DNA from: Paramoeba atlantica | Taxonomy: Eukaryota > Protista > Discosea | Assembly: GCA_977017575.1 (NCBI GenBank) | Contig: CDRNVI010000232.1 | Location: forward strand, 1-22,833 | Direction: 5' to 3' | DNA length: 22,833 nucleotides | Shown here: one piece after another, positions 1 through 22,399 of the stretch | Position numbering within the stretch: position 1 is the first letter of the stretch | Layout: every line of letters starts with the position of its first letter | Position numbers and translations under genes: made by a program | The notes under the pieces: generated by a model | What the model was told of the DNA's origin: nothing | The model's database searches: none | What the model saw: the letters and a program-made list of their open reading frames with translations, nothing else

Positions 1-492
1 AGGATTACCACATTATTTACTGGACTTTTTTTGTTTGCAACGATCATGGTTAGCGCCCAAGATATTTCAGAACATGCATTAGGGCTCCGACTTGGGGACA
101 GTGATGGTTTTGGGGCGGAAATTTCCTATCAAAAATCTATAGGCCGTTATAACCGGGCCGAGTTTAACCTTGGTTGGCGGGACAGTCGGAATTTTGATGC
201 TTTTAAGTTATCCGGTGTGTACCAGTGGGTGCATCAATTGGATGGAAATTTTAACTGGTACTACGGTGTAGGTGGCGGTTTGGGAAGTGTAGAATTTGAT
301 CCCATACCCGGAGGAAATGACAATGATGGCCTTTTTGTATTTGCCGCTGGGGATATCGGGGTCGAATACAATTTTGACATCCCTTTGTTACTTTCCTTGG
401 ATTTTAGACCTGAAATAGGGCTTATTGGATATGATGGATTCAACGATGATTTCGATTTTGACATTGCCCTAGGGATTCGATACCAATTTTGA
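1..492 (+). CDS. Outer-membrane beta-barrel protein (Bacteroidota type), 5' end just outside the window
   Basis: Frame is open from base 1 (RITTLFTGLFLFATIMVSAQ, signal-peptide-like). Alternating aromatic/Gly beta-strand pattern (NWYYGVGGGLG, GDIGVEYNF) and C-terminal GIRYQF with terminal Phe, typical of BAM substrates. Confidence 0.7.
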   Translation, partial: RITTLFTGLFLFATIMVSAQDISEHALGLRLGDSDGFGAEISYQKSIGRYNRAEFNLGWRDSRNFDAFKLSGVYQWVHQLDGNFNWYYGVGGGLGSVEFDPIPGGNDNDGLFVFAAGDIGVEYNFDIPLLLSLDFRPEIGLIGYDGFNDDFDFDIALGIRYQF

Positions 493-512
493 TAAGTAAG
501 AACAAATTGTTG

Positions 513-547
513 GCCCTTGACGTTTAAGAAAAGTTAAGGGCTTTTTT
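513..547 (+). terminator. Rho-independent terminator
   Basis: Stem GCCCTTGAC (513-521) / GTTAAGGGC (533-541) with one G-U pair, followed by TTTTTT, about 20 nt after the beta-barrel stop. Confidence 0.7.
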
Positions 548-590
548 ATGCCACAAGTATTAAATACCTTAGCGACTTAAAATAGCTAGA

Positions 591-1698
591 ATGAAAAAAA
601 TATTGACGATTACTTTGGGGGTCTTGTTTTTGGCTTCATGCAATTCAAAACCGGAAGGTTTCACCCTGAATGCCACTGTTACTGGTGATTTGGACAATGG
701 TACCCAAGTTTTCTTAAAAACAACAGATTCTGTGAATCAGTTGATTGATGTTGATACAACCACCGTGGAAAATGGTGCCTTTGCGTTCACAGGTTCGCAA
801 AAGAGCCTAAGCTGTACTATATTTTTGTTGAATCCAATAGAGGTAACGTACCCTTGGTTTTGGAAAATGGGGATATAGACCTAAGATTCCAAAAGGATAG
901 CATGAACTATGCCCGGTTAAAAGGTACGTCTCAAAATGATTTCTTTATGAATTTTTGGGCGAATCCAGAAAACTTTCTGAGCGTGCAAGATCCATGCAAG
1001 ATGATATGAGGGTGGCTGCACAGCAGCAAGATACCGCTTCGGTTACAGCACTTCGGGAAGAGTACATCGAGTTTCAGGATGAGGTAAAAACTTTCAACAT
1101 TGATTTTGCCCGGGAAAATCCAGATGCCCTTATATCCGTGTTGATCATCAGCAACCTAATGATGAGCAAGGCGGTTCCCAACCAGGAAATCAAAACACTC
1201 TATGAAGCACTTTCACCCGAAATGAAGGCTTCCTCCCCTGGCTCAAGATTAAAAGAGCAATTGGATAAGAACAAATCAACGGAGATTGGTGGCGTTGCCC
1301 CAGAATTTTCTGCACCCACGCCAGATGGCAGTACATTGGCGCTTAGTGATGTTAAGGGCAAGGTGACCCTGGTCGATTTTTGGGCCGCATGGTGTAGACC
1401 TTGCAGGGCAGAAAACCCAAATATAGTTTCCGTTTACAACAAATACCATGAGAAGGGATTAAATGTTATCGGGGTTTCTTTAGATACACGTGCCGAGGAC
1501 TGGACAAAAGCAATTGAGGCAGATGGATTGGCTTGGAACCACATCTCAAACCTAAAACGTTTTCAGGATCCCGTGGCTCGCTTATACAACATCAATGCTA
1601 TCCCAGCTGCATTTCTTTTGGATGAAAATGGAGTTATCGTTGCCAAAGATTTACGTGGACCGGCTTTGGAACAAAAGGTGGCTGAACTTCTTAATTAG
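591..1698 (+). CDS. TlpA-like thiol:disulfide oxidoreductase lipoprotein (DUF4369-type N-domain plus redoxin domain); two -1 homopolymer frameshifts
   Basis: Lipobox-like FLASC. DFWAAWCRPC thioredoxin motif and INAIPAAFLLDENG. ORFs 591-878 and 955-1698 join through an intermediate frame (EPKLYYIFVESNRGNVPLVLENGDI...) if one A is added near 800 and one T near 955. Confidence 0.88.
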
Positions 1699-1720
1699 AA
1701 TTCAAAAAACAAACATGTGT

Positions 1721-1752
1721 AAAGCCGAAGGTTACCACCCTTCGGCTTTTTT
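1721..1752. terminator. Intrinsic terminator between convergent genes, possibly bidirectional
   Basis: Perfect 11-bp stem AAAGCCGAAGG (1721-1731) / CCTTCGGCTTT (1739-1749), 7-nt loop, T-run after it; lies between the redoxin and rhomboid stops. Confidence 0.85.
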
Positions 1753-1765
1753 GATTTATCCCTTA

Positions 1766-2416
1766 TTATATTTTCCCCATCTTCTCCAAAACAAAAAGAA
1801 TAAGAATGGGTATGGCCAACAAGACCACAATAAAAGTATCGGTTGCAAAGAGTTCAGGTCTAAAAAGCAAAGTCGTTGCATAACCGCCGATTGCCCCACC
1901 AAAATGCGCAGTATGCCCTATATTTCCCAATCTGCTTTTCATACCATAAATGGAGTACAGTAGATATGCAATCCCCAGCACATAGGCAGGTACAGGGATG
2001 GGTATGAACATAATCCCCAAGCGCATATCTGGATTAAGTAAAATTGCGGCATATAGAATTCCGGTAACAGCTCCGCTGGCACCCACTGCGCTGTAATAGG
2101 GTTCATTTTTGTGAAAAAAAAGCGCCAAAAGGCTTCCCCCTACAAGGCTGATAAAGTAAATAATCAAAAATTTTCCGGCACCAAACGAACTGATGACCAC
2201 ATTGGCAAAAAAATAGAGCGTGAACATATTAAAAAACAAATGGGATATGTCCACATGCAGAAAACCAGAGGTCACCGCTCTTTCCCTTTGTCCAGCTTGT
2301 ATTCCGCCTATGCTAAACTTATATCGGTCAAAAAAAACAGCATCTTTAAATCCCCGTAAAGAGATTAAAATATTGGCCGCAATGATAGCAATGGTAGCGG
2401 CGTGCAAATTGTACAT
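1766..2416 (-). CDS. Rhomboid family intramembrane serine protease
   Basis: HLFFNMFTLYFFA, catalytic GASG, and HTAHFGGAIGG motifs; multiple hydrophobic segments. Confidence 0.93.
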   Translation of the reverse strand: MYNLHAATIAIIAANILISLRGFKDAVFFDRYKFSIGGIQAGQRERAVTSGFLHVDISHLFFNMFTLYFFANVVISSFGAGKFLIIYFISLVGGSLLALFFHKNEPYYSAVGASGAVTGILYAAILLNPDMRLGIMFIPIPVPAYVLGIAYLLYSIYGMKSRLGNIGHTAHFGGAIGGYATTLLFRPELFATDTFIVVLLAIPILILFVLEKMGKI

Positions 2417-2435
2417 AGGCTATAAGGTTTGGGCC

Positions 2436-2453
2436 CAAATATAGCTATATTTG
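2436..2453. promoter_or_regulatory. Back-to-back Bacteroidota -7 promoter elements (TAnnTTTG) forming an 18-bp palindrome
   Basis: CAAATATAGCTATATTTG is a perfect palindrome. TATATTTG reads on + (2446-2453) toward the acyltransferase ATG at 2469 and on - (2443-2436) toward the rhomboid ATG at 2416. Confidence 0.6.
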
Positions 2454-2468
2454 CCACAAGATTTACGT

Positions 2469-3357
2469 ATGCAATTAGTAGTTTTTCATCCTTGCCTATC
2501 CCCTACTCTGGTTGATTTCCAGACTTCCATTTAGAATACTTTATTTCATTTCTAATATTGTATATCAAATGCTTTACCATGTCTTCGGTTATCGAAAAAA
2601 GTGGTTCGAGGAAATTTGGCATTGGCATTTCCAAATAAAACAAGTACAGAGCGTTTAACCATCGAGAAAAAGTTCTACAAACATCTTTGTGATATGTTTT
2701 TGGAAATGGTAAAAACATTGGGAATCAGTAATGCACAAATGAAAAAAAGGTATGTTTTTACCAATGTGGAAGAGGTTATACAGTTTGAGAAAAAAGGTAA
2801 AAATGTAATGATAATGATGCCCCACTATGCAAGTTGGGAATGGGTTTTTTCCTTAAACTCTCAACTAAGTTCCAGGGCATATGCGATATACCAAGCCATT
2901 CAGAATAAGCACTTTGACAAATTGGTGCGTGATATCCGTAGTAAATACGGCACAACACTCATTCGGACTAATGAAAGTCGGAAAATAATAAACGAAGCAA
3001 AGACAAGTGGTCAGTTGATTACCGTTGGCATTATAAGCGACCAATCTCCTATGTTGAATAGGGCGAGACATTGGGCCAAATTCATGAACATTATGGTTCC
3101 AGTTCATGTTGGCGGGGAAGAGCTTTGTAAAGAACATGATATTGTACCGATTTATCTTAAAGTTAAAAAACTAAAACGCGGGTACTATCAAGGTACTTTC
3201 AAGGTACTTGCCGAGAAACCCAGAGAAGTTGATAATTACAAAATATCCGAGGCATTTTTGAGCGAGACGGAAAAATCGATTTATGAAGCACCCGAATATT
3301 ATTTTTGGACGCATAAAAGATGGAAGCACAAAGACAAAATGCCAAAGAAATTTCTAA
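2469..3357 (+). CDS. Lipid A biosynthesis (LpxL/LpxP-family) lysophospholipid acyltransferase; homopolymer frameshifts
   Basis: MQLVVFILAYPLLWLISRLPF start recovered by fixing a T-run (~2482) and an A-run (~2595). Motifs PHYASWE, IISDQSP and YYFWTHKRWKH. Removing one T at 3351-3353 gives KKF-TAA at 3355-3357; as written the frame runs on to 3560, so the 3' end is inferred. Confidence 0.85.
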
Positions 3358-3395
3358 ACTCACCCGGTGCCCATGCCGGTAAGAAAAGCAATTTA

Positions 3396-3560
3396 AAAAC
3401 CCTTACATTTTTATTGCTTTTGTTTTCGGTTACCTACTTTTTGAAACACCATAGAATCCTGGCCTCAGACCGGCCTGGATTTGGAAAAAGTCGTCCGTTG
3501 AGAAAGAGAATCATTTTATCGTTTGGAGTCAAGAAAAACTGGTTAAGGAAATCCTATTAA
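3396..3560 (+). pseudogene. Possible relic of an alpha/beta-hydrolase gene
   Basis: Frame reads KTLTFLLLLFSVTYFLKHHRILASDRPGFGKS. The last part matches the alpha/beta-hydrolase xxIAxDxPGFGxS motif. No start codon, and it stops about 23 codons after the motif. Confidence 0.35.
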
Positions 3561-3659
3561 GTTGGGTGGGCACGGATTAAATTCTTCTATTGATAAGTTC
3601 CGCAAAGTTGTTGGTCTAAATTAAATGGGAATACTTAACAAATTCCATATACTTCCTGT

Positions 3660-4653
3660 ATGGAAATTTTATCGACACTTTTGAACGAGGTTCTAGGCTT
3701 TTTAGGAATATCCCAAGTTTTGGAAATCCTCAAAACCGGTGACTATGCCGCATTTAGAACTTATGAAGGAATAGCATCACTTATATATCCCAATAATACC
3801 ACTACTCTTATTATTGGAATTGGCTGTAGGATTGATCTACAAGAAACCGCAGATCAAGGTCTACAAAGTTAATTTCCTGATTTACATATTCAATCGGTTT
3901 GTAGGACGGTTTATTTCTATCGCTATGGTCGCCTTCAGTATTGGTGTTTTTAGTGCTTATGCACCTTTTAAAACAAGTAACACCTGGTATTGGTTCATCT
4001 ATGCCTACATCGTTTGGGAGCTTGGTCATTTTGTGTATCATTATTTAGGACACAAAGTGCGGCTTTTTTGGTGTCTGCACTCTACCCACCACGCTCCAGA
4101 AGAAATGAACCTATCTGTAACCCATGCCCATTTTTTCTTGGAGGCTCCCTACGCAGACATCATCAGAACCACCGTCTGTATCCTTCTTGGTGTACAGCCT
4201 GAACTTTTGTTTACCGTTATGTTCATTGATGGTACGTATGGGGCCTTTATCCATATTGGAGAAAATATGATCAAGGATGCCCGTTTTGGTTTTTTGAACA
4301 AATTGATGCTCACTCCGTCGCACCATCGAGTACATCATGCAAGAAACCCGTTGTACATGGATACCAATTTTTGTAATCTTTTAAACATTTGGGATAGGGT
4401 GTTTGGTACCTATCAAGAAGAGCAAAGAAATGTTCAAATAGAATATGGGATAACCCGAGAAATGGACTCCGGAAATTTTATGGATGTATATTTTGGTGAA
4501 ATCACCGCTTTGGCAAAGGATGTTATAAAAGCACCAGGACTTGGGAACAAACTGCTTTATTTGGTCAAGCCGCCGGGGTGGAGCCATACTGGCGAACATA
4601 AAACCGCAAAGATGGTCAGGAGTGACTACCTAAAAGCTGGGCCTGGAGTTTAA
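3660..4653 (+). CDS. Sterol desaturase / fatty acid hydroxylase superfamily membrane protein; one +1 frameshift at CCC ~3789-3791
   Basis: Histidine boxes HYLGH, HSTHH and HHRVHH, then DTNFCNLLNIWDRVFGT. ORF 3660-3872 joins 3814-4653 by removing one C. Confidence 0.9.
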
Positions 4654-4720
4654 ATTTTTCTTAAAGTTTGGACGTTGGCTGTTTTGTTTCCTAAATTGAA
4701 CTTAATTCAAAAACCAAGAA

Positions 4721-5260
4721 ATGAAACAGTTAATCACCTCCCTCTTCTTACTTTGTAGCATATTATCCTTTGGGCAAAAAGACAATACCGTCTCCAAGGA
4801 AATTGTTGATGCCATTAAACAAGACGTTTGGATTCCCTTTATGGAATCGTATGTAGAATTGAACCCCAATAAGCTAAAATCCATTCATTCCCAGGAAATT
4901 GTTCGGGTAACCATTGACCAGAATGAGATTAAATCGGGTGAAAGCTACCTGGAACATTTTGGTGGTTTCTTGGTCAATGTAAAACAACGTGGAAGTAAAG
5001 TGGGCATTGCCTTTGCCATTTTATCCACCGCTATTGATAAAAGTGAGGAAATGGCCTACCAAACTGGCTACTATCGCTTTAGCTCCCAAGGTAAAAAGGA
5101 TGACGAAATGGTGGTTCGAGGCTATGGTTATTTCAACGTTGGCCTAAAGTTGGAAGATGGAATATGGAAAATATGGCTAGACTCGGATAAGAAATCGGAC
5201 ATCTCCCATTCAGACTTCAGCAAACTAAAAACCCTTTACGAAATAGAAGGACCTTCCTAG
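4721..5260 (+). CDS. Secreted NTF2-like / SnoaL-fold (DUF4440-like) protein
   Basis: Signal peptide MKQLITSLFLLCSILSFGQ. MAYQTGYYRF and LKLEDGIWKIWLDSD resemble NTF2-fold C-terminal strands. Confidence 0.6.
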   Translation: MKQLITSLFLLCSILSFGQKDNTVSKEIVDAIKQDVWIPFMESYVELNPNKLKSIHSQEIVRVTIDQNEIKSGESYLEHFGGFLVNVKQRGSKVGIAFAILSTAIDKSEEMAYQTGYYRFSSQGKKDDEMVVRGYGYFNVGLKLEDGIWKIWLDSDKKSDISHSDFSKLKTLYEIEGPS

Positions 5261-6647
5261 GCCAGCCCTGCAACTTCTTTTATTTCTTCAATAATCCGGT
5301 CTGCTAACCCATCTGCTTCTGCTTGGGATTTAGCTTCCGTGTAGATTCGTATAATGGGCTCGGTATTTGACTTGCGCAAGTGCACCCAGTTTTCCGAGAA
5401 GTCAATTTTTACCCCATCTATGGTGGATACTTCTTCTCCTTTGTACTTATTGTACATGGCTTCTAAAAGTGCATCAACGTCCAACTCCGGGGTAAGTTGA
5501 ATTTTCTTTTTGCTCATAAAATAGCTGGGGTAACTTGCTCTTAATTCAGCTACTGTTCCTCCTTTTTCTGACATTAGCATCAAAAACAACGCGGTCCCCA
5601 CCAAGGAATCACGTCCATAATGGCTTTCGGGATAAATAATTCCGCCATTGCCCTCTCCACCAATAATGGCTTGGTTTTCCTTCATTTTGGTCACCACGTT
5701 TACTTCACCTACCGCTGCAGCTTCATACGTACCTCCATGTTTTTGGGAGATATCTCGTAGGGCTCTGGAAGATGATAAATTGGAAACGGTATTACCTTTT
5801 GTTTTACCCAAGACATAATCTGCACAGGCCACCAAGGTATATTCTTCCCCAAACATTTCTCCATCATTGCTAATGAATGCCAAGCGGTCCACATCTGGGT
5901 CCACTACGATCCCAAAATCCGCCTGCTCTTTAACAACCATTTCGCAAATATCTCCAAGGTGCTCCTTTAAGGGTTCAGGATTGTGCGGAAAATGTCCAGT
6001 GGGTTCGCAATATAGTTTAACCACCTCTACGCCCAATTCCTCCAAGAGTTTTGGGATGGCAATTCCGCCAGTAGAATTTACACCATCTACAACTACCTTA
6101 AATCCGGCTTTTTTGATGATTTCCTGGTCAACCAAGGGTAGATTAAGTACTTCGTCTATATGGATATCGATATAGGAATCGTTTTTGGTGATAGTACCTA
6201 AATCATCCACTTCTGCAAAATTAAAATCTTCTCTTTCTGCCAATTCCAGTATAATTGCTCCTTGTTTGGCGTCCAAAAATTCACCCCTTTCGTTCAAAAG
6301 TTTTAGGGCATTCCATTGTTTAGGATTATGACTTGCGGTCAAAATAATTCCTCCGTCCGCCTTTTCCAAGGGCACCGCAATCTCTACCGTAGGTGTCGTT
6401 GACAATCCTAAGTCAACTACATCAATACCAAGTCCAACCAGGGTGGACACCACCAAATTTTGGATCATTTCCCAGATAACCGAGCATCACGACCAATTAC
6501 AACGGTCAAATCGGTCTTTCCAGAATATTCTTTTAGCCAGGTACCATATGCGGCCGCAAACTTAACGGCATCAATTGGGGTTAGGTTATCATTGGTTGTT
6601 CCTCCTATGGTTCCTCGAATTCCAGAAATGGATTTGATTAGCGTCAT
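5257..6647 (-). CDS. glmM: Phosphoglucosamine mutase; one -1 frameshift near 6468
   Basis: MTLIKSISGIRG start, GRDAR, phosphoserine motif TASHNP, metal-binding DPDVDR, GGEGNGG and SNTEPIIRIY. Confidence 0.92.
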
Positions 6648-6665
6648 GTGTTAAAAAAGTTTTTG

Positions 6666-6673
6666 CAAATATA
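6666..6673 (-). promoter_or_regulatory. Bacteroidota -7 promoter element for glmM
   Basis: TATATTTG on the minus strand, 18 nt upstream of the glmM ATG; no clear -33 TTG seen. Confidence 0.45.
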
Positions 6674-6734
6674 GAACGCTGTTGGCGATTCCATGTTTCG
6701 AATTTGTAAATTTCAACTGAAAAAAATTGCACTG

Positions 6735-7329
6735 ATGAACTTTTTGGCACATATCTATCTTTCCTTTGATGACAAGGAAATTACCTTGGGCAATTTTCTT
6801 TGCGGACCACATACGTGGAAATAAATTCAAACATTTTCCGGAACGCATCCAAAAAGGAATCTTGTTGCACAGGGAGATAGACACATACACCGATTCTCAT
6901 CCCATAGCCAAACAGAGTAGCAAAAGACTTCATAAAAACTACAGCCATTACAGCAGAGTGATTGTGGATATTTTTTATGATCATTTTTTAGCAAAGAATT
7001 GGATGCAATATTCCTCAACCCCTCTTCAAGATTATGTAGAGAATTTTTACGACCTCTTAGAGGATAATTATTCCATTTTGCCCTTGGCCACCCAACGAAT
7101 CATGCCCTACATGGTTGCAGACAACTGGTTATATAGTTATGCTGACCTTAAAGGTATTTCTAAAGTGTTGGACGGAATGAACCGAAGAACCAAAAACAAA
7201 TCCAAGATGAATTTTGCCATTTTTGACTTGGAGGAGCATTACAGTTCCTTTGAAAATGAATTCACCAGTTTTTTTGAAGAATTGATTACCTTTTCCCGAG
7301 AAAAATACAATTCCTTATGCGAAAATTAA
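6735..7329 (+). CDS. acpH: Acyl carrier protein phosphodiesterase (AcpH/DUF479 family); one +1 frameshift in T-run ~6795
   Basis: True start at 6735 gives MNFLAHIYLS...GNF, which joins ADHIRG...LHREIDTYTDSHP, IVDIFYDHFLA and the rest of ORF 6766-7329. Confidence 0.85.
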
Positions 7330-8959
7330 TACTAGTACTCCCACTCTTACTGTTCCTACATTGTAAAAAGCAACCCGCAACTCCAACCGGATTGGTTACC
7401 GAAAAGGCTATGGTGGTCACCGCACGGAAAGAAGCATCTGAAATTGGTTCCGCTGTCATGCAAAAAGGAGGCAATGCTTTTGACGCCATGGTGGCAACTG
7501 AACTTGCTTTGGCCGTTGCCTATCCCTTTGCTGGAAACTTAGGTGGTGGTGGATTTATGGTGTATAGAAAAAATAACGGTGATGTTGGTGGACTGGATTA
7601 CCGGGAAAAAGCTCCTTTATCCGCCCATAAGGATATGTACTTGGACTCATTGGGCAATGTAATCCCCGATATGAGCACGATAGGAGCTACCGCAGTAGGC
7701 GTTCCTGGTACAGTTGCTGGAGTAATGGCGGTTCATGAGAAGTTTGGCTCCTTACCCCTATCCGAATTGTTAAAACCAGTAGTTGCCTTGGCTGAAAAAG
7801 GGGTTGTGGTCACCCAAAAACAGGCTAAAAGATTGGAAGCGTATAAAGAACGTTTTGTACAAGTAAATGGGGACAGCACCAAGTTTGCACAGGATATTAA
7901 AGCTGGAGATACCCTTAAGTATCCGGCATTGGCCAAAACGCTAACTAGTATTCTCGAAAAAGGAAAAGATGGATTCTACGCAGGTGAAGTAGCTCAGAAA
8001 TTAGCCACTTTCATTCAAGAAAATGGGGGATTTGTAACTGAGGAAGACTTAGCAAAATATGAAGCCATATGGAGAGATCCTATTGTTTTTGAGTATAAGG
8101 ATCTTAAAATGATTTCCATGAGCCCTCCCAGTAGCGGCGGGTTACCATAAATCAAATATTTAAAATGATGGAGCCCTACGACATAGCCAAGTTTGGGCAC
8201 AACTCGCCAAAGGCCATACAACTTTTTACGGAAGCTTCAAGAAGAGCTTATGCCGACCGGAACTATTTTTTAGGCGATCCTGATTTTGTGGATATCCCAC
8301 TTGAGACCATTTTAAACGACACCTATTTGGAAGAACGAATGCATGATTTTTCCTTTGATAAAGCTACCCTATCTTCAGACGTTAGTCATGGAGCAGTAGA
8401 AATCGTTGAAAGTATGGAAACCACCCATTATTCCATTGTCGATGCCGATGGGAACGCCATTTCTGCCACCACAACCTTAAATGGAGGTTATGGGTCCAAG
8501 TTGTATTCCGCTGAACTGGGCTTCTTTCTAAACAATGAAATGGATGATTTTAGCGCAAAACCTGGAGTGCCTAACATGTTTGGACTTATAGGTGCGGAGG
8601 CCAACAGTATTGCCCCTGAAAAAAGAATGTTAAGCAGTATGACCCCAACTATTGTAGAGAAAGATGGAAAACTATATATGGTGGTTGGAACCCCAGGCGG
8701 GTCAACCATTATAACGGCAGTGGCCCAGACCATTCTTAATGTTTATGAATTTAACTTAAGCATGCAGGAGGCTGTGAATGCCCCACGTTTCCATCACCAA
8801 TGGTTACCAGATATGGTCATTTTTGAACCAGAAGGTTTTCCCGAAGCTCTCAAAACTGGGTTAAAGTCCAAGGGGTATATCATTAACGAAAGTAGAACTC
8901 CAATCATAGGAAAAGTAGATGCCATTCGCGTTTTGGAAAACAATAAACTAGAAGGCGGG
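7317..8959 (+). CDS. ggt: Gamma-glutamyltransferase, one -1 frameshift (~8140), C-terminus truncated by the junction
   Basis: GGNAFDA, GNLGGGGF, DYREKAP, PPSSGG, catalytic ETTHYSIVD, NNEMDDF, LSSMTPT and GTPGGSTI. Homology ends at KLEGG; the usual terminal ADxRG-type residues are replaced by antisense nad1 sequence. Confidence 0.93.
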
Positions 8960-8960
8960 T
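8959..8960. other. Bacterial / mitochondrial junction (probable chimera)
   Basis: ...GAA GGC GGG | TTGTATATAACC...: ggt codons on the left, antisense nad1 (GYIQ) on the right; base composition changes abruptly. Confidence 0.9.
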
Positions 8961-9079
8961 TGTATATAACCCATAACTTTTCTTTCAAAAACTGTAAAAA
9001 TAACTACAGTTACTAATACAGGTACTATTAAAATTAAATATTTTAATATTGTTATAATTAAAGTTAACAAAAAATTCAT
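8960..9079 (-). CDS. nad1: NADH dehydrogenase subunit 1, first 40 codons only (cut by junction)
   Basis: MNFLLTLIITILKYLILIVPVLVTVVIFTVFERKVMGYIQ; ERKVMxxxQ is the conserved Nad1 motif preceding RRxGPN. Not in the ORF track. Confidence 0.9.
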
Positions 9080-9092
9080 ATTTTAAAATCTT

Positions 9093-11123
9093 TTAATGAA
9101 AATTATTATATATTTTTTTAGAATTAATTAAACAACTGTTTAAAATTTTTGATGATTGTAAAAATTTATTATTAGAATATATATTAGTCATATTTTTATA
9201 TAAATTTTTATTTTTCAAAACCATAATATTTTTATAATTTGATATTTCATTATTATTATATATATTTAATATAGTATTTATATTTATATTATAAGAACTT
9301 AATAATAATCTAATATTACTAAAAGATAATTTCATAATCTTTTCATCACTAATAATTGTTTTAAATAATATATATAATATTTTTCAATCATTTCTTGCAT
9401 TCTTCGGCGGAAATAAAATAAATTTTGTCGATTGACAATAACCAAATATATTTATAAATAAACTTTTTTTTTCATAATGAGTTATTGATGGTAATAATAA
9501 ATCATAATTATTAATTTCTTTTAATATAGGTAAATAACAACCTTGAAAAATATTATAATCACAATTATAATTTAAATAATTATAATTATAATTATTTAAA
9601 TTATATAAAATATTATTTTCTTTATAAATCATTTTTTTAAAACTATAATCATTAAATTTTACTAATGAATTAAATAAATTTAATTCATTAGCTATAATAT
9701 TTATATTTAAATTATTTAAAAACCCTATATTAATACTTGATTCTAAATTTAAATTTTTCAATGTTGTAATTAAAAAATTAAATAAAGTATTATCATTTAA
9801 TAAAATTAAATTTTTAGATGATGCTTTTAATACAATATTATTTAATAAAGATTTTCCCTCTATAAATTTTTTACTTCTAATAAATTAGATGAATAATTTA
9901 TATTTTTATAATTTTGATTATAAGAGGTCCCTATATTATAAATATTTAATAATTTTAAATCTTTAAATCGTTTTAACTTTATATTTAATAAAGGATATTC
10001 TAATCTAATATTTATATTAATTAATATAATATTTTTAAATTCATTTAATTCTTTATATATATTATAATCTAAAATATAATTTTTACGATTATTTGAATTC
10101 CTAGTTAATTTTTTATAATTAATAGTAAATTCATGATTATTAAAATAATTTTTTCCTTTTTTTATTACTAAAGCAGTTTCACTATCTATATTATCACCTA
10201 TTAAAAATGTAAATTACTATTTAAACATTTTTTTAATATTAAATTTAATACTTTTTCTCAACTATATATAATAAATTTATTTGCACCTTCCTTTTTTAAA
10301 GGATTAATTATTCGATTATTCTTTTGATTATCATAAGAAAAACGAGTTAGATCTGAGATTCAGATCTCATGTATATAATCATTAAATAAAGGTAAAACTC
10401 TTAATATTTCACTATCTCTAATATCTATTCTAATATTTATATGTAATAAATCATTAATATCTATAGTATTTCAAGAAATAAGTTCTCAAGTCTAGAAATG
10501 AATGAATAAGGTTTAGAAGTTAAAGCACCTACAGGGCATAAATCAATTAAATTACCAGATAATTCCGAATTAATATTTTTTGATAAAAAATTACTTATTT
10601 CTATATTTTGTCCTCGACCTATCAAACCAAAATATTTATAACCAATAAACTCATCTATAAAACGTATACATCTAGTACAATGAATACATCTTGTCATAAT
10701 AGTTTTTATTAAAGGTCCACAATCTTTATCATTAACAGATCTTTTATTTTCATAAAATCTACCTCTATCATTACCAAAAATTAATGATTGATCTTGTAAA
10801 TCACATTCACCTCCTTGATCACAAATAGGACAATCTAATGGATGATTTAATAATAAAAATTCTAAAACACCTTCTCTAGTCTTTTTAACTAATTTAGTAT
10901 TAGTTAATATATGCATATTATTATTTAAAGGGGATGCACAAGAAGCTATAGGTTTTATAGCTCCTTTTACTTCAACTAAACACATTCTACAATTACCTGC
11001 TATAGATAATTGTTCATGATAACAAAATTTTGGTATATCTATATTAATCATATTACATAATTGTAATATAGTTTTCATATTATTATCTTTAACTGCAATA
11101 TTATTTATTTTATAATTATTCAT
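9093..11123 (-). CDS. nad11: NADH dehydrogenase subunit 11 (75-kDa / NuoG homologue), full length; three -1 homopolymer frameshifts
   Basis: Fe-S motifs [36 protein letters not shown] and CPVGAL. The downstream part is recovered across shifts (~10489, ~10205, ~9870): [33 protein letters not shown] and ARNDW(TGA). About 677 aa. Confidence 0.93.
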
Positions 11124-11124
11124 T

Positions 11125-11712
11125 TTATGGATTCTTTATAAACCTTTTATTTTGTTCAAAAATTACCTGTTCTTTTAGATAATATGTTCTTTTACATGTT
11201 AATATAATAACACCAATCATAGCTAATAATAATATAAGACTAAGTATTATAAATAATATATAATGCTTATCGTATAATATTAAAGATATCAAATTTAAAT
11301 TTGATATATTATATAAAATATTATAATAATTTATATAATTATTATTGTTTGAGGAATCTATATTAAAAATTACATTAATCGGTATATAATATAAATAAAT
11401 TAAAAATATTATTAATAAAGTTAATAATATAATACCTATCAAATATTTTATATTTAATTCATTCAATTCTATAACTTTTATATTTAACATATAAATAATA
11501 AATAAAAATAATACTGCTATTGCACCTATATAAACTATTAAAAACACCATAGACATAAATTCCAACTCCAACAATAATAATATAAAAACTATATTACAAA
11601 AAACTAATATTAAATAAATAATAGAATGTAAAGGATTTTTAGAAATTATTACTAAAATAGCCGATACAATACTTATTATAAAAAAAAATATATAAAATAA
11701 ATTTTGATCCAT
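11125..11712 (-). CDS. nad6: NADH dehydrogenase subunit 6
   Basis: [34 protein letters not shown] and [11 protein letters not shown] motifs. Confidence 0.95.
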
Positions 11713-11729
11713 ATGTTTTAAAAAAAATT

Positions 11730-13747
11730 TTACTTATTTTTATATTTATTTATTAAAATTATAGCAATTAATATAAATAATAATTCACTATTTAAATTAT
11801 TTATAGGTAATATATAGAATATAATTAAACTAACAGATGAAATAATAAATAAGAACAAATAATTAAAAATATAACCTGTTGGGAAAAAATATTTATAATT
11901 AATACTTAAAGAATTTCATAATCTAACTAAACCTAAAGGCCCTATTAATTCTATAATACCTCTATCAATATTTTTAAATACTATATAGGATAATTTAATA
12001 AAACCTCCTAAAATTATTTTATTATAAATAGTATCCACATACCATTTATAAGAAAAAAAACTTGCAATATTATTATATCTTTTAAAATATAAATAATTAT
12101 TACTTCTTAAAACTTTATATAAATAAGTATAATAATAATTTATTAAAAAAATAATTATTATACCAGACATACTAAAAAAAAAAGGAATATTTTTTATATA
12201 TCAAGGTAAAAATTCTGATTCTAAAATTAAAATATTTCTAGTTGAAATTATATTTAATCAATTTAATCAAGTATCATTACCTAATCCTATAAATAAATCT
12301 TTATTAATATAACCAAAAAATATACTATTTAAAGCTAATATAAATAAAGGTAAAGACATAAAAATATTAGATTCATGTATTAATTCAAACATTTTTCTAT
12401 AACCATTAGGTGATGTTATAAAAACATATACTAATAACCTAATACTATATAATGATGTAAACAAAGCTGCTATAACACTTAATCAATAAATAAAAGAACT
12501 ATCTATTATATATGATATATAAGTAATTTCAATTATAACATCTTTAGAATAAAACCCTGTTAAAAAAGGTATACCCATTAATGCTAAAGAACCTATTAAC
12601 ATCATAATATAACTATAAGGTAATAATTTAATTAACCCTCCATATTTTCTTATATCTTGTTCATCAGATAAAGCATGTATAATAGCCCCCGCACTTAAAA
12701 ATAATAATGCTTTAAAAAAAGCATGATTAGTTAAATGAAATAAACTTAGTGAATAATTTGATAACCCACATATAAACACCATATAACCTAATTGACTACA
12801 AGTTGAATATGCTATAACCTTTTTTATATCATTTTGAAATAAACCTATAGTTGCTGCAAAAAAACTAGTTAAAACACCAACTAAAGTTATAATTCATAAA
12901 CCAATAGCTGAATATTCAACCATTGGTGATAATCTTATTAAAATAAATACTCCAGCTGTAACCATTGTTGCTGCATGTATAAGAGCAGAAACTGGTGTTG
13001 GACCAGCCATAGCATCCGGTAATCAAGTATGTAAACCTAATTGTGCAGATTTTCCCATAGCTCCAATTAATATAAAAATAGTTATCAAAGTTATTGTATT
13101 AAAATAATTATTTATAAAATAAATATAATCAAATTGACACATATCACTTATTGCGAATATTATACTAAAATTTAATGTTTTATATTCTAAATATATTAAA
13201 CATATACCTAAACCAACTCCAATGTCACCTATTCTATTCATAATAATAGCTTTAATTGCAGCTTTGTTTGCATCTGCTATTGTAAATCAAAAATTAATTA
13301 ATAAATAAGATACTAAACCAACACCTTCTCAACCTAAAAATAATTGTAATATATTATCAGCTGTAACTAACATTAACATAAATCATGTAAATAATGATAA
13401 ATAAGATACAAATCGAGAAGAAAAAGGATCATTATACATATAACCTATTGAATAAAAATGAACTAATAAAGATATTGTATTTACTACAATTAACATAACA
13501 CCTGTTACAGGATCGAAAATAAATCCTCATGTTACATTAAATAAACCTATATTAAATCATGAAAATAATTTTAAAAAACATACAGAACCTTTTAATACAG
13601 TTTCATAAAAAATATAATATGATAACAACACTGTTAATAACATATTAAAATTCGCAATTATAAAACTACCTTTATTTCCTAATAAACGCCCAAAAAACTT
13701 ATAATTAAAAAACTTATTAATGGTAAATATAATACTAATAAATACAT
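11730..13747 (-). CDS. nad5: NADH dehydrogenase subunit 5; one -1 frameshift (~13695)
   Basis: [10 protein letters not shown] start; GW(TGA)[20 protein letters not shown](TGA)[21 protein letters not shown] and KWYVD. Four track ORFs lie in one frame, separated only by TGA. Confidence 0.95.
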
Positions 13748-13766
13748 AAAAAGTATATAAAAAAAT

Positions 13767-14087
13767 TTAACCTTTTATAGTACTAATATAATCTATAGAT
13801 ATAATACCTCTTAATCTATAATAAATAACTATTAATCCTAAACCAATAGCTGATTCAGAAGCTGCTATAGTTAATATATATAAAGCAAATATCTGACCAT
13901 ATATATCATCTAAATATATTGATAAAAAAATAAATAATAAATTTACAGATGCTAAAATTAACTCTATAGACATTATTATTATTATTATATTTCTACGTGT
14001 AATAAAAATACCCGCTATACCTATAATAAATAAACTAAAACTTAAAATAGGTATAAATGTTTCAAAAGGAATTAAGATATTAAACAT
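13767..14087 (-). CDS. nad4L: NADH dehydrogenase subunit 4L
   Basis: IIMSIELILASVNL, GQIFALYILTIAASESAIGLGL. Confidence 0.95.
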   Translation of the reverse strand: MFNILIPFETFIPILSFSLFIIGIAGIFITRRNIIIIIMSIELILASVNLLFIFLSIYLDDIYGQIFALYILTIAASESAIGLGLIVIYYRLRGIISIDYISTIKG

Positions 14088-14105
14088 TGTTAAAATAAAT
14101 GTTTT

Positions 14106-14858
14106 TTAATGTCCAGCTTCGTAAGAATCTTTTAAATAAATAGAAACTAAAACAATAAATACATAAGCTTGTAAAAATGAAATACCAAACTCTAATAAAA
14201 AAATTACAGTTATTAATAATATTCCTAAAATACCTATAATATAATTAAATTTTAATATTTTTACAATAAAAAATAATAAAATATGTATTAATGAATGTCC
14301 CGACATTAAATTTGCAAATAACCGTATAGATAAACTAAAACCTCTTGCAATATAAGAAATAACTTCGATACCTATTAACATAGGTAATAAAATATTAGGA
14401 ACACCTTTTGGTATAAATAACTGTATAAAATGTAATTTTTGTTTTAAAAAACCTATTATAGTTAATCCTATAACAGTAATTGATCCTAATAAAAATGTTA
14501 AAATTATATGACTTGTAATAGTAAAAGAACTTGGTACTAAACCAATAAAATTTGCTATTAATATAAAATAAAATAAGCTAGCTATATAAACAAAATATGG
14601 TTCACCTCTTTTACCTACTTGTGTAACTAAAACATTTAACGGAAATAAATATATAAAATTCTCATATATGTATTGTCATAACGATTTATAAACTAAATTT
14701 AATTTAGATAATAATACATTACTTGTTATAATATTTATTATAAAAAAAATAATAAATAAATATATAAATAAGTTTGTTATATAAAAATCACTAAAATAAA
14801 AATTTATATATAAAGAAAATATATCAAATTGATCTAATGGTTGAAAAAATTTATTCAT
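14106..14858 (-). CDS. atp6: ATP synthase subunit a
   Basis: ATG at 14858 (MNKFFQPLDQF). One frame through a TGA; ANFIGLVPSSFTITSH, IEVISYIARGFSLSIRLFANLMSGH and LQAYVF. About 250 aa. Confidence 0.95.
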
Positions 14859-14875
14859 AATATATAAAATAATTT

Positions 14876-15232
14876 TTACTCTCAGGTTAAAGCACCTTTT
14901 AATCATTCATATATGAAACCTATAGTTAATATAGTAATAAAAATCAATACTACTAAAAAACCACTTGTTCCTAAAAAATTAACTAAAGTCAATCATGGAA
15001 ATAAAAATATTATTTCTAAATCAAAAATTAAAAATAAAATAGATACTAAATAAAATCTTACATTAAAATTATGTCTAGTATCTTCAAAAGGGTGAAAACC
15101 ACATTCATATGCTGAAACTTTTTCTATCTCAAATTTTGAATAAATAAGAAGTAAAATAATAGAAAATAATACTAAAGAAATAATCATACTTAATGATATA
15201 GAGATAATAATTATACTATATTCAAAATTCAT
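14876..15232 (-). CDS. nad3: NADH dehydrogenase subunit 3
   Basis: [27 protein letters not shown](TGA), and YEW(TGA)LKGALTW(TGA)E-TAA. Confidence 0.95.
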
Positions 15233-15235
15233 ATA

Positions 15236-15738
15236 TTATTTTTTTATAGTAAAATATTTTTTAAAAATAAAATTTTTATAGTTTATTTGATTTAATAATT
15301 TAAATTTAATACTAAATATAAAATAATTATTAATATAAAAAGTATTTAAAAAATTATTATATAAATAACTATATAAATTTGATATAGAATTTAATAATAT
15401 ATTTAAATTAATATTATAAAATAAAATTATAAATTTAAAATAATAATTTTGAAATGTAGATATTAAAATATTTTGAAATATTATATTTTTATATAAATAA
15501 AAAATATAATATAGTTTTAATAATTTTAAATAATATTGTTTATATATTTCATTTTTTTTATAATTAAGAAATTACTTTTTAACGAAGAAATATAAAAAGT
15601 AAATAAAGATATAATTAATAATATAATTATAATTAATAAATTACCAACAGAATTAAAAAAAAATAAATGATTTGAAAACATATTAACTAAAAATAATATA
15701 GAAATATAAAAAATTATAAAATTAAAAATTTTATTCAT
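15236..15738 (-). CDS. ORF of ~167 aa, possible ATP synthase subunit b (atp4/ymf39-like); one -1 frameshift in A-run ~15555
   Basis: Two hydrophobic N-terminal segments, then ~100 stop-free codons after adding one A. Ends 3 nt before the nad3 ATG. Identity is inferred from size and architecture only. Confidence 0.45.
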
Positions 15739-15742
15739 ATGT

Positions 15743-16893
15743 TTAAGTAATATTTTTATATAATGATTTTTCTAATTTAACAATAACAGGTAACAATATA
15801 ATAAAATATATAAAATAAAAACTTGTAGCCATTTGACCTATAAAATAATAAGGTTCTTCTATAGGTTTACCTCCTATTCAGGTTAATGTAATAAAATCCA
15901 TAATAAATAATCAAAAACCTAAATTATAAATAGGTCTAAAATAACCACTAACTATAGGTGCTTTCACATAAAATGGAAATATTATTAAAAACAATAATAG
16001 ATAAAACTAATAAGATAAAACCACCTGCTTTATCTGGTACAGATCTTAAAATTGCATAAAAAGCTTTAAAATATCATTCTGGTACGATATGTACGGGTGT
16101 TACTAAAGGATTTGCTTCTAAATAATTATCTGCGTCTATTATACTTGGAGTATGTTTTATAGCATACATATTAAAACCAAATAATAATAATAATGAACTA
16201 AATAAATCTTTAAAAACAAAATAAGGATGAAATGGTATTTGATCTACCTTATGATTAATACCTAATATATTATTAGAACCAACTTCATGTAATAATATAA
16301 TATGAACTCCAGCTAAAGCTGCTATAACAAAAGGTAATAAATAATGTAAACTAAAAAAAACGATGTAATGTAGCTTCATCAACAGAAAATCCACCTCATA
16401 ATCATAATAATATATCATTACCTACAAAAGGTATAACTGACACTAAATTAGTAATAACAGTTGCTGCTCAAAAACTCATTTGACCCCAAGGTAAAACATA
16501 ACCTACAAAAGCTGTTATAATCATAATTAATAATATTATAACACCAGATACTCATACAAATTGTCTAGGATAAGTATATGAACCATAATATAAACCTCTA
16601 AATACATGTAAATATATTACAAAAAAAAAAACTGATGATCCACTAGCATGGTACATTCTTAGCATATCACCAAAATGTACATCATTAACTATATGTCTAA
16701 CACTAGCAAAAGCTAAATCAGCATTAGGTGTATAATACATAGCTAAAATAACACCTGTTAAAATCTGAATAATTAAAAACAAACCAGCACTAACTCCTAA
16801 ATTTCAAGCATAAGTTATATTAGCAGGAGCTGGATAAACTACTAAAGCATTATAAAATGCATTTACAAAAATATCTTTTTTAACTAATCTCAT
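15743..16893 (-). CDS. cob: Apocytochrome b; two +1 T-run frameshifts (~16355, ~15990)
   Basis: [11 protein letters not shown](TGA)N, heme His ligands ([26 protein letters not shown]), PWGQMSFW, W(TGA)LW(TGA)GGFSV and PEW(TGA)Y. About 382 aa after correction. Confidence 0.96.
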
Positions 16894-16896
16894 TAT

Positions 16897-17274
16897 TTAT
16901 ATATTGTTTTTTATTATAAAATATTTTTTATTTAATAAAGATTCTTTTTTTAAGAAATTTAAACCTAATATATATAATTTACTAAAAATAATAATTTTAA
17001 TATTATTAATTTTAGATTTTAATAAAACAACAAATTTATTTAATAAAAAATTATTATTTAATAAAATACTTAAATTTAATTTTATAATAAATAAAATATT
17101 TGATTCTAATAATAATAATCTTTTTATTATAGATTTTAATTTATATTTTCTTAATTTAATAGTTTTATTTATTAAAGGGAATATATATCTTGCATAATAA
17201 ATATAAATTAATCAAAAAAATATAAAATTTAAAACTAATTCTAAAAATAAAATTCCTAAATCTAATTGTGGCAT
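16897..17274 (-). CDS. atp8: ATP synthase subunit 8 (long protist type, 125 aa)
   Basis: MPQLDLGILFLELVLNFIFFW(TGA)LIYIYYARYIFPLINKTIKLRK; uninterrupted frame to TAA 3 nt before cob. Missed by the track. Confidence 0.88.
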
Positions 17275-17304
17275 AATAATAATTTTTTTTTTTATTACTA
17301 TAAT

Positions 17305-20300
17305 TTAATTACTAAATAATTTTCTTAATCATTTTTTCACGTTTATTCTTTTCTTTCTTTTTCTATACAACATCTTGAAGGTGCAAACATATATAAGATA
17401 AAAATATTTTTTTCTTTTTACCTTATTTTAAAAATATTATTATTATTCAAATTAATAATAATATTCAAATTTAAAAATTTCTTTTTAAATTTATTAATTA
17501 AATATTATTTAATTAATATTTTTTAGAATTTAATAAAGTAACAGTATTTAATTTATAATTTATTAAGCTATTATTATTTAATAAACTATAATCATAGTCA
17601 TAAATATTATTAAAAAAATTTATTTCATTTAATTTTGAATAATAATTTAAATTTTTTTTATTTGAATACTTAATACTATATATATACTTATATATTATAT
17701 TTAAATTTTTCATAAATTTAGTAATAAATAAACTAATATCACAATTTATTTTTTTAGTATAATTATTTTTTAAAATCAAATTATTAAATAATACTAATTT
17801 TAAAAAATATTTATAATAACTATATATAGAATTATTATATTTCAAATTATTTATATTTTTATAATTATTAGTATAATCATTAATATTATTAAATAATATA
17901 TAATTTTTTATTGATACATTTTTTACTAAAAATTTATTATAGTAAACTTTATTTTTAATAAAACTTTTGAAAGTCTTATTTTTGTTATAAAAATATTGTA
18001 ACAAATTACTTCTAATATTAATTAAAATTTTTGAATAATTTAGTTTACTAAAATTTTTATATTGATTAATTCGTTTTAAAAATAATAAATCAATATTATA
18101 TATTTTTCTATATATATTATAAATTTTAAAATGTATATATTTTGATAAATACGACATTATATTATCTTCATTACGTTTAAAATAATTTTCTTTTATTAAT
18201 GATCATTTAGGATATTCTACTAATAATGTTCTTCTAAAAAAATACATACTACTTTTTTTAAATAAACCTTTTTTAAATAAAATTTTTAATTTTTTTTTCA
18301 TTTGTTTAAATAATAATGTTTTATTATTATTAATAAACTTATAATTTAAAAAAAAAAGATGTAATATTATTATACCTATAGAATCTTCTCTTTTTTCCTG
18401 TTAAATATAAATTTAATAATTTTTTTTCTCTTTTCTTTAAATTATTTTTTGAATTAATATAAATACTTTCTTCTTTCTATTATAAAATTTTAAATATGAA
18501 CTCTTCTGAGTAAAAGATTTATTTATAAATCAATTTCTTTTTTTTCATAAACAAATTGAGTTTTTAATATTTTTTTTTCTTTTATTGGTTTTAAAATTAT
18601 TTTTCTCTTTTCTTTTATTAAATTATTATTTATAAATAAATAATAAGTTCAAGATTTTAAATTTTTCTCTTTTCTTTTATTTAATTTTAAATTATCAATT
18701 AAATTACAATTATAAGATATAAAATTTCTCTTTTTTAAACTTTTATTCTCTTTTCTTTTAGATATAATTGAATTATTATTTAATAAATTTTTTGAATAAA
18801 AAATATAATTCTTTTTAATCTTAGTTAAAACTTTTATTAAATAATTTTCACAATTAATATTACAAGAAAATACTAAAAAATTATTATAAGGTATCTTTAT
18901 AGATTTTCATTTATAATATAAATCATTCTTTTCTTTTTCATTTATAATATAAAAATTTCATTTTTTTTTATGAAATTTATTTATTATATCGTAATAATCT
19001 AATTCATAACTATTAAATATAAAATTTTTATATTTATAAACTTTAAAATTTTTATATTTATGAGAACAATAATCTTTATTAAATTTATTATATTTACAAT
19101 TATAATTATAAATATTAAAATTCAATAAATCTTTATTATTATAATTGTAAATATAATAATTTATTAAAGATTTCATATTTTTATTATTATTAAAATAATT
19201 TTTTTTCTTTATTCCCTTTTTTTTATGTAATTTATTTAATTTAATTAAATTTAAAGAAATATTATAAAAAAAATTTATCAAATTTATATATTTTTTTTTC
19301 TTTTGTTGTTGATTTTTTAATAATAAAAAATTTTGAATTTTTTCTTTTTATATTTATAAATTTTTTAATTTTTTTCTTTTTATATTTATAATTATTAATT
19401 TTATTATAATTATATTTATTAAAAATACGAAAATATAAATATTTATTTATTTGTTTTCAATTTCTTTTTTTTAATATGTTATTAAAACTATTCTTAAAAA
19501 AGAAATTTTTAACATTTTTAGAAATTTTATAATTATTTAATAATTTAATATTATTTAATATTATTAAAAATATTTTTAATATTTTATAATCAATATTCGA
19601 ATTAATAGTATATAAAAATTTATTCATTATATAAAATTTTTTATAATTTTTATATAAAAATTTATTTTTAATATTATTATAAATACTATTAATATATAAA
19701 TTTTTTATAAAATATAAAAAATTATAATTTAATAATTTTTTTTCTTTTAATTAAATATGAATAATTATATAATTTTATTCTTTTTTCTTTTCTTTTATAT
19801 AATTTTAAAGAATAAAAGTTATTTTTTATTCTTTTTATATAATCTAAAAATTTCTCTTTTCTTTTATATTTTTTTCATAAATTAATATTATATATTTTAT
19901 AAAAAAAATTATATCTAATATTAAATAAATTTCTCTTTTCTTTTTTATTTTTAAATAAATTTAGTTTATTTAAAAATAAATTATAATTATATAATTTATT
20001 TTTAAATTTTTTTTTAATTAAAATTTTTCTCTTTCTATATAATTTATTTTTATTTTTTTTATACAATAATTTTTTAAATAAAAAATAATAATTATTATAA
20101 AAATTTTTTATATTAAATTTTTTATATTTTAAATATTTTTTATTATAATATTTTAATAAATTTTCTTTTCTAAATAATAAAAATAAATTTTTTTTATTCT
20201 TTTCAAGACAATATTTTTTTCTTATATAAAAATTATTATTAAATTTTATATAATCTAAATTAAATAAATTTAATTTTGATAAAGACTTAAAATTATAACC

Positions 20301-20993
20301 TAAAAATACTTGACCTTTTTTTAAAAAAATAGTTTTTTTTATTATATTATTATTATAATGAAATAATTGTTGTTTTCTTCTTCTCTTTTCTTCTCTTTTC
20401 TTTCTAAAACTATTACTTATAGTTTGAAAATATAAACCATTTTCTGGTCCAAAATTTAAAAAATCTTCATTATCTATATTATTAAAACGAGTTTGCTTTA
20501 AAAACAATTTTTTTCTTAATTTATTTTTATATGATAATAAAAAATTATAATTTTTATACCTTAACTTTCTATTATATATAAATTTTTTATTACAATCTAA
20601 AAAATTCATAAAAGAATTTGAAAAAAAATTATTATAAAAATTTTTATAATTATCTTTTATAACAAAAAACGATTTAGAATTATTTAAATTCAATAATAAA
20701 TATTTATTATTTAAATACTCTAATTTATAAAATTTTTTATTAATATTAAATTTAAAAAATTTATTCATTAAATAATAAATATTTATTATTAAATTAAGAT
20801 TGAAATTTTTTATTTCTGAATAAATATTATCACTAATAACATCAATAACATTATTTAATAATAAAAAATTTTTACTCTTATAATTTAAATTATATAAAGA
20901 TAACTCATTATAATCTGTTTTATTATCAAATAAAACTATTTTATTATTTTTTATATTATGTTTTATTATATTATTATATCATGTAGTTTTCAT
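17305..20993 (-). CDS. Very long Lys/Asn/Tyr/Phe-rich ORF region at the rps11 position (one or several ORFs; possibly expanded rps11)
   Basis: ATG at 20993 (MKTTW(TGA)YNN...) is in frame with track ORF 19875-20768. Long stop-free segments continue through TGA codons and apparent homopolymer shifts to ~17513; the 3' boundary is uncertain. Confidence 0.5.
18428..20403 (-). repeat. Dispersed 12-nt motif CTCTTTTCTTTT (minus strand AAAAGAAAAGAG, mostly encoding KRKE)
   Basis: Full copies at 18605, 18667, 18748, 19854 and 19933; near-copies at 18428, 20383 and 20393. Confidence 0.55.
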
Positions 20994-20996
20994 CAC

Positions 20997-21311
20997 TTAT
21001 ATTATTTTTTTTCTCGATGATCTATTATTAGTCTTTGATCGTTGATTATACATAGGTAACCCTCTAATACGTTTATAACCAAAATAAGAACCATTAACTA
21101 TTTTTTTCATAATATTATTATATCTAATATGTTTAATTTGTTCCTTCCTTTTAAAAAAATATAACAAATTTTTTTCTAACTGTTTTAATAAACCTTTATT
21201 ATTAATATTTTTATAAGATTTATTATATAATAAACCAAATTTAAATAATATTATAGATAATAAAGATAAACCAATATTATAATTATTAATTATATAACGT
21301 TTTATATTCAT
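20997..21311 (-). CDS. rps13: Mitochondrial ribosomal protein S13
   Basis: GSYFGYKRIRGLPMYNQRSKTNNRS matches the S13 signature; position in the spc/alpha-derived cluster. Confidence 0.92.
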   Translation of the reverse strand: MNIKRYIINNYNIGLSLLSIILFKFGLLYNKSYKNINNKGLLKQLEKNLLYFFKRKEQIKHIRYNNIMKKIVNGSYFGYKRIRGLPMYNQRSKTNNRSSRKKII

Positions 21312-21316
21312 ATTTT

Positions 21317-21505
21317 TTATTGTTTATTTATAATACCCATTTCATATAAATAATTTTTAACTTGAAGTCAATTATTATCGAAAATTAATTTTAAATTATA
21401 ATTATGTATATAAATTAAATTATAATTATAATTTAATAATACCTTAAAACTTATTGCTGAATTAATAAGTTCCTTTTTTTCAATTTTTTTTAATATATAA
21501 TTCAT
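21317..21505 (-). CDS. 62-aa ORF between rpl6 and rps13 (rpl18 position), or a frameshifted rpl6 extension
   Basis: ATG 21505, MNYILKKIEKKELINSAISFKVLLNYNYNLIYIHNYNLKLIFDNNW(TGA)LQVKNYLYEMGIINKQ, TAA 5 nt before rps13. Confidence 0.35.
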
Positions 21506-22001: not shown

Positions 22002-22004
22002 TTA

Positions 22005-22396
22005 TTATAATATATTTTTATATAATAGATGTACTTTTAATAAGGCTTTACCACCACTTTTATAATATAAGCTTCATCGTGTGTTAACAAACCTTTATTA
22101 CTACTATAAAAACAAGGATTAAAATAAAATTTAGAAAAATTTTTATTAAAAGTTTTAAATTTTAAATATTGTTTATTACCTCCTGAAGATAATTGTTCTA
22201 AAAAAATTAAAGGCTTATTATTATAATATTTTAATGTTATTTTTATTTGGTATTTATTACATATTATAAAACTATTTATCAAATTTAATTCGTATAAACG
22301 TGATAATATAGGTAAATACTTTTTTTTTAATGGTATATATAAACTTTTTAAATTAGCTATATACCCATTATTAATTTGACTACAAAAAAAATTCAT
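22005..22396 (-). CDS. rps8: Mitochondrial ribosomal protein S8; one -1 frameshift (~22060)
   Basis: SQINNG, IKITLKYYNNKP and SSNKGLLTHDEA, then SGGKALL after adding one A; position between rps14 and rpl6. Confidence 0.88.
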
Positions 22397-22399
22397 AAC

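Follow-up and report, generated by a model that had tools for sequence, protein, structure and literature searches.

Chimeric reads, in which unrelated DNA molecules are joined, made up 3.17% of reads in ligation-based nanopore libraries in one benchmark, compared with 0.02% in rapid kits (PMC8495745), and misassembled contigs seeded by single chimeric reads are known (PMC7500977). The locus analyzed here shares with such cases a blunt joining of unrelated molecules at arbitrary positions, parent molecules that are intact elsewhere, the participation of abundant organelle DNA, a frequent partner, and long-read homopolymer indels in the consensus; it differs in that we infer the physical origin of the join (ligation, amplification, or software). 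A related phenomenon is the contamination of xenic protist assemblies by cobionts or food bacteria. Paramoeba-type cultures, in which the host carries a Perkinsela endosymbiont, are xenic, and 5,595 scaffolds of the Paramoeba pemaquidensis assembly were discarded as bacterial (PMC5601477). Our locus likewise places a Flavobacteriaceae segment in a protist assembly, the bacterium itself being closed in a public assembly; here, however, the contaminant is welded to organelle DNA instead of forming a separate contig, and hence taxon-based contig filters could either miss the contaminant or discard genuine mitochondrial DNA. Finally, in genuine NUMT-type insertions and inter-domain transfers, organelle DNA also abuts foreign DNA sharply and without homology. 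Genuine insertions, in contrast to what is described below, replace the empty allele, recur in independent data, and come to diverge from the organelle sequence; at our locus the intact alleles are the dominant ones, the join occurs in none of the listed contigs of four sequencing runs, and the two halves are effectively identical to free replicons.

We analyzed a stretch of 22,833 nt (the window) from the Paramoeba atlantica assembly. Positions 1–8958 (plus strand) are a segment of a marine Flavobacteriaceae chromosome, as judged from blastn, Pfam matches, and synteny. The genes recognized by Pfam encode a TlpA-like thiol-disulfide protein (redoxin), a rhomboid protein, a lipid A acyltransferase, a fatty-acid hydroxylase, a glmM-like phosphoglucosamine mutase, an ACP phosphodiesterase, and gamma-glutamyltranspeptidase (ggt). 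An exact-protein look-up with the rhomboid protein and its 179-aa neighbor led to a 3,459,028-bp contig (ENA ERZ24900291 ctg4026c, also present in NCBI; hereafter L092), whose positions 5281–14239 correspond to window positions 1–8958 with 0 mismatches and nine one-base indels. We interpret the letter "c" that ends the contig name as the assembler's mark for a circle and accordingly read L092 as a circular chromosome. In it, ggt (560 aa), glmM (463 aa), and the ACP phosphodiesterase gene are intact, and a RimK-like gene follows ggt. The gene order of the bacterial half is syntenic with that of Flagellimonas and Croceitalea. The fatty-acid hydroxylase gene (window positions 3560–4720; 330 aa in the accurate chromosome) lies between the lipid A acyltransferase gene and the 179-aa open reading frame (ORF), and this insertion is missing from a syntenic Flagellimonas locus (L007).

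The last bacterial gene of the window, ggt (7317–8958, plus strand), is present in two frames, 7317–8150 and 8165–8959, which cover positions 2–232 and 241–504 of the 512-position PF01019 (G_glu_transpept) profile, position 504 being reached at window position 8959. The split is due to a one-base consensus error at 8138, where the contigs of all runs have an additional G. Because the N-terminal ORF ends at this window-specific error, its exact-protein look-up returned 0 matches. Relatives of the protein among GTDB species representatives are 71–86% identical, and all belong to the Flavobacteriaceae (for example, Croceitalea, Flagellimonas, and Maribacter). Downstream of the motif LEGG, nine flavobacterial relatives read ADKRGDDxAVG(F/Y) followed by a stop codon. 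The chromosome of the same strain does likewise, its ggt ending in LEGGADKRGDDTAVGF. Thus, the last 12 codons and the stop codon are missing from ggt in the window.

The remaining 13.9 kb (8959–22833, minus strand) come from a very AT-rich protist mitochondrial genome (~13% GC in this half), as established by blastn, ORFs called with translation table 4, and the identity of the genes. All of these lie on the minus strand (code 4): the 5′ end of nad1, nad11, nad6, nad5, nad4L, atp6, nad3, orf167, cob, orf126, a giant 1159-aa ORF, and ribosomal protein genes. The preliminary description had proposed that TGA encodes tryptophan in this DNA, and nad5 indeed contains 12 TGA codons versus a single TGG. 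By blastn, the half is collinear throughout with a 39,429-bp contig (ENA ERZ24900291 ctg3923c; hereafter L088) at 99.83% identity, with 4 mismatches and 20 gap letters. L088 belongs to the same assembly as the bacterial chromosome and is a contig separate from it; from the same "c" at the end of its name we interpret it as circular.

At the very start of the mitochondrial half lie the first 40 codons of nad1 and the first base of codon 41 (8959–9079, minus strand). Translation of the minus strand from 9079 to 8960 yields the first 40 residues, which end in ERKVMGYIQ; the native, intact protein (328 aa) continues with RRQGPIKVG beyond the break in the window. The neighboring nad11 (9096–11123, minus strand) is distributed over four frames in the window, owing to consensus indels at 9817–9823, 9866–9872, 10202–10207, and 10489–10490, and is intact (676 aa) in L081, L083, and L084. 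Exact-protein look-up recovered the nad6 and nad4L products from contigs in five ENA assemblies and in two Logan runs. The mitochondrial DNA is present in ERZ24900291 and in three further ENA assemblies (ERZ26167977, ERZ24894578, and ERZ26867466), with nad1 whole wherever a contig reaches it. The public mitochondrial contigs carry nad11 (676 aa) and, after it, intact nad1 (328 aa), nad4, nad2, rps4, atp1, and cox2. Logan contigs of ERR14835898 and ERR14835899 carry the mitochondrial DNA as well and end inside nad11, short of the junction.

The blastn alignments of the two halves to their native replicons stop exactly at 8958|8959, and it is here that the loose ends of the run contigs described below begin on both sides. 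The preliminary description had ggt homology running to LEGG and giving way to antisense nad1 at 8959|8960; the junction is of the kind described, but the native alignments place the break one base earlier. In the bacterium, 8958 is followed by A, which makes the ggt codon GGA; in the mitochondrial genome, 8959 is preceded by C, and codon 41 of nad1 (CGA) begins with the base that pairs with G8959. G8959 therefore belongs to nad1, and it is only by coincidence that the ggt glycine codon still encodes glycine. Codon 40 of nad1 (GYIQ), at which the antisense segment had been said to end, is recovered by translation, to which the single base of codon 41 has to be added. The two genes do meet tail-to-tail, both broken and both without their 3′ parts. 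Past the join, the ggt frame runs into antisense nad1 for 18 codons and a stop codon (8960–9016, plus strand), and translation reproduces the spurious C-terminal tail given in the preliminary description, LYITHNFSFKNCKNNYSY.

The join is blunt. Alignment to the native replicons shows 0 nt of shared sequence, where at most 1 nt had been allowed for, and no filler bases. The composition changes in a step, as had been claimed, and not in a gradient: in 100-nt windows GC is 0.39, then 0.18, then 0.11 over ~100 nt at the join, dropping from a level of ~41% up to ~8960 to 5–26% beyond. The reported lack of a target duplication, inverted repeat, or integrase agrees with our searches, in which no direct or inverted repeats bracketed the junction (there were AT-rich chance matches only) and Pfam recognized no mobile-element genes on the bacterial side. 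Of the signatures of integration, neither a target-site duplication, nor terminal repeats, nor microhomology, nor a nearby recombinase was found at the junction, whose neighbors are housekeeping genes only. Scans of the whole window, including the 13.9 kb of mitochondrial DNA, with ARAGORN (bacterial code) and Rfam (gathering thresholds) gave 0 matches, so that the join has no tRNA or rRNA landmark in its vicinity.

We compared window positions 5960–11959 with the Logan contigs of four public runs. Three of these (X1, X2, and X3) come from one study with one organism label, the study of the source organism; X5 comes from another study with another label. In X1 (a 57-kb contig), X2, and X3, the bacterial-side contig fits the window up to 8958 and then continues for at least 255 letters that translate as ADKRGDDTA, the normal end of ggt. 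In X2, X3 (nine contigs), and X5, mitochondrial-side contigs fit the window from 8959 onward, and the reverse complement of the sequence that precedes this position reads RRQGPIKVG. The mitochondrial contig of X5 is 2,165 nt long, with 1,528 nt beyond the break. None of the listed Logan contigs of X1, X2, X3, and X5 bridges 8958|8959, contigs being constructs from which rare variants are dropped. L092 and L088, like the run contigs, pass 8958 and 8959 without interruption. The junction is thus not reproduced in any of the four runs, while the mitochondrial DNA with whole nad1 is found in four ENA assemblies and the chromosome with whole ggt in one. Intact ggt and intact nad1, for which the preliminary description had suggested a search, are therefore the dominant forms, and a rare joined molecule is compatible with data at the contig level. 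Within the same stretch, an AT-rich, near-palindromic segment lies at window positions 9543–9628, and at 9576 in it the Logan contigs from several runs are all interrupted; these breaks probably reflect a k-mer repeat, not a biological end.

The two halves also differ in abundance from sample to sample. Word depths, which are coarse when taken from contigs, were 477 for the bacterial versus 473 for the mitochondrial side in X1, ~6,900 versus at least 25,000 in X2, ~345 versus ~1e5 in X3, and ~0 versus 2.2–2.5 in X5. The ratio of bacterium to mitochondrion is thus ~1:1 in X1, ~1:4 or more in X2, and ~1:300 or more in X3, and X5 is essentially without the bacterial half. Across samples, the amount of one half is independent of that of the other.

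Several genes on both halves of the window are split between reading frames. Wherever runs cover the affected sites, all of them disagree with the window, at 6470 (+C), 6794 (−1), 8138 (+G), 9817 (−3), 9866 (+T), 10202 (+A), and 10489 (+G), and at two substitutions. All seven indels in the 6-kb compared stretch are thus specific to the window; five of the seven alter the length of a homopolymer, and the seven sit at, or a few bases from, switches of reading frame. Over the whole bacterial half, one-base error sites are located at 798, 951, 2482, 2594, 3384, 3789, 6470, 6794, and 8138; the mitochondrial half contains ~20 error sites within 9003–22561, nearly all of one base and mostly in homopolymers. 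The resulting false frameshifts affect the TlpA-like gene, the lipid A acyltransferase gene, glmM, the ACP phosphodiesterase gene, ggt, nad11, cob, and others. Since the indels are contradicted by run contigs, lie at frame switches, and mostly concern homopolymers, we attribute them to an error-prone consensus of long-read type drawn over normal genes. Decay of pseudogenes was considered as their cause and rejected: run contigs contradict all of the frameshifts within the 6 kb, and the circular contigs contradict every one. Hence the mitochondrial DNA is not decayed, as the preliminary description had maintained; its frameshifts are consensus errors, and the half remains 99.83% identical to the free mitochondrial DNA. 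Other contigs of the assembly may carry similar errors, and apparent pseudogenes in them need to be treated with caution.

We conclude, with a probability of roughly 95%, that the 8958|8959 junction is artefactual, that it reflects no biological joining within the dominant DNA population, and that one contig was written from two unrelated replicons. As part of this explanation, both replicons almost certainly came from one xenic culture or sample that contained a marine Flavobacteriaceae chromosome and a very abundant protist mitochondrial circle. A ligation chimera or mis-join had been favored in the preliminary description, and the evidence bears this out: ggt is intact in three runs, nad1 is intact in three runs, and both are whole on separate circular contigs. 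The most likely route appears to be a physically chimeric long read. Two fragments would have been joined end to end during ligation- or amplification-based library preparation, the assembler would have retained the chimeric read and built a short contig on it, and normal reads would then have polished each half of that contig. Such a route would explain why the join is blunt and falls at arbitrary sites within two genes, why it is devoid of homology, target duplication, and filler bases, and why the consensus on both halves is correct save for a few substitutions and mostly homopolymeric one-base indels. In accidents of this kind, the very abundant mitochondrial DNA (word depth ~1e5 in X3) is the partner most to be expected.

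A variant of the artefact would do without any chimeric molecule: separate contigs, for example circular ones linearized at arbitrary points or rotated to dnaA, could have been concatenated in silico without N spacers by scaffolding, gap closing, or file handling. This is not a biological alternative, and we regard it as possible but rather unlikely. In its favor, the join is blunt and shows neither overlap (0 nt) nor filler, but common scaffolders insert Ns, and, if the window is the whole contig, its bacterial part (only 9 kb) and its mitochondrial part (13.9 kb) are of the size of reads and not of replicons. Graph and overlap assemblers, moreover, require a read across a join; as a blunt join without overlap could not arise in overlap-based assembly unless a read crossed it, a chimeric long read is the most economical cause.

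Biological readings of the junction would have to accommodate the intact alleles. One is that some flavobacterial cells, a rare subclone, truly carry at least 14 kb of mitochondrial DNA within ggt, inserted 39 nt before the end of the gene after, for instance, uptake of DNA from lysed protists and illegitimate end joining, and captured by long-read assembly. Non-homologous end joining would leave just such a blunt, homology-free junction, and a variant of low frequency would agree with the contig-level data; contigs from three runs and the closed chromosome, however, show ggt in its intact form only, the bacterial-to-mitochondrial depth ratio changes more than 100-fold from run to run, and signs of selection or adaptation are absent, the mitochondrial half keeping 99.83% identity to the free molecule, TGA for tryptophan, and ~13% GC. 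The empty-site allele, far from being absent or in the minority, is thus represented by intact ggt in the 57-kb contig of X1, in X2, in X3, and in the closed chromosome. We consider this insertion highly improbable. With intact alleles dominating, the join not reproduced, and the halves varying independently, the reading of the junction as a real transfer fails.

The other is a nuclear locus of the protist in which a NUMT and a bacterial insert lie side by side, and this we find scarcely credible. The record is a protist assembly, and the frameshifts on both halves resemble pseudogene decay at first sight; yet the bacterial half shows 0 substitutions relative to the free chromosome over 8,958 nt, and the mitochondrial half has 4 in 13.9 kb, of which the two within the compared stretch are contradicted by every covering run. 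Apart from these, the window differs only by indels, most of them in homopolymers and nearly all one base long, which are absent from the run contigs where these were compared. The window contains no nuclear-type sequence, the word depth of the mitochondrial half reaches ~1e5, and in place of a nuclear flank and divergence from the organelle copy the locus has a bacterial flank and the near-identity to free mitochondrial DNA given above.

The junction, then, is not a real biological feature and does not represent gene transfer; what it offers is of value for curation and not for biology. We recommend splitting the contig at 8958|8959. The preliminary description had warned that the record would be contaminated if it were labeled a bacterial genome; contaminated it is, but it is a protist assembly, so that it is the bacterial half that is the contaminant or cobiont and should be flagged as cobiont contamination. 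The mitochondrial half is best regarded as a redundant, error-bearing copy of the circular mitogenome of 39.4 kb. If it is not removed, the join could pass for gene transfer from organelle to bacterium or from bacterium to eukaryote, and it creates a false GGT C terminus and false pseudogenes.

The free mitogenome itself merits a short description. The 39,429-bp molecule (L083 and L088) has a GC content of ~16% over the 16 kb read and is shorter than the mitochondrial DNA of P. pemaquidensis (48,522 bp; PMC5601477); in the ~24 kb examined the called genes all lie on one strand with TGA as almost the sole tryptophan codon. The gene order is rpl16-rpl14-orf185-rps14-rps8-orf179-orf62-orf104-orf1159-orf126-cob-orf167-nad3-atp6-nad4L-nad5-nad6-nad11-nad1-nad4-like-nad2-like-orf201-rps4-atp1-cox2. 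Look-up of its atp1 in the Atlas yielded only generic ATP synthase clusters of bacterial type. Window positions 17305–20993, which appear as broken, basic, low-complexity ORFs, correspond to one uninterrupted ORF of 1159 aa at positions 3097–6576 of L088, the breaks in the window being consensus indels; this ORF contains 9 TGA codons, has no Pfam match, and is located between the ribosomal protein genes and orf126/cob. A second mitogenome with identical gene order and 80–88% nucleotide identity is present in another metagenome (ENA ERZ25074695 ctg243506, L090) and presumably belongs to a sister species of the protist.
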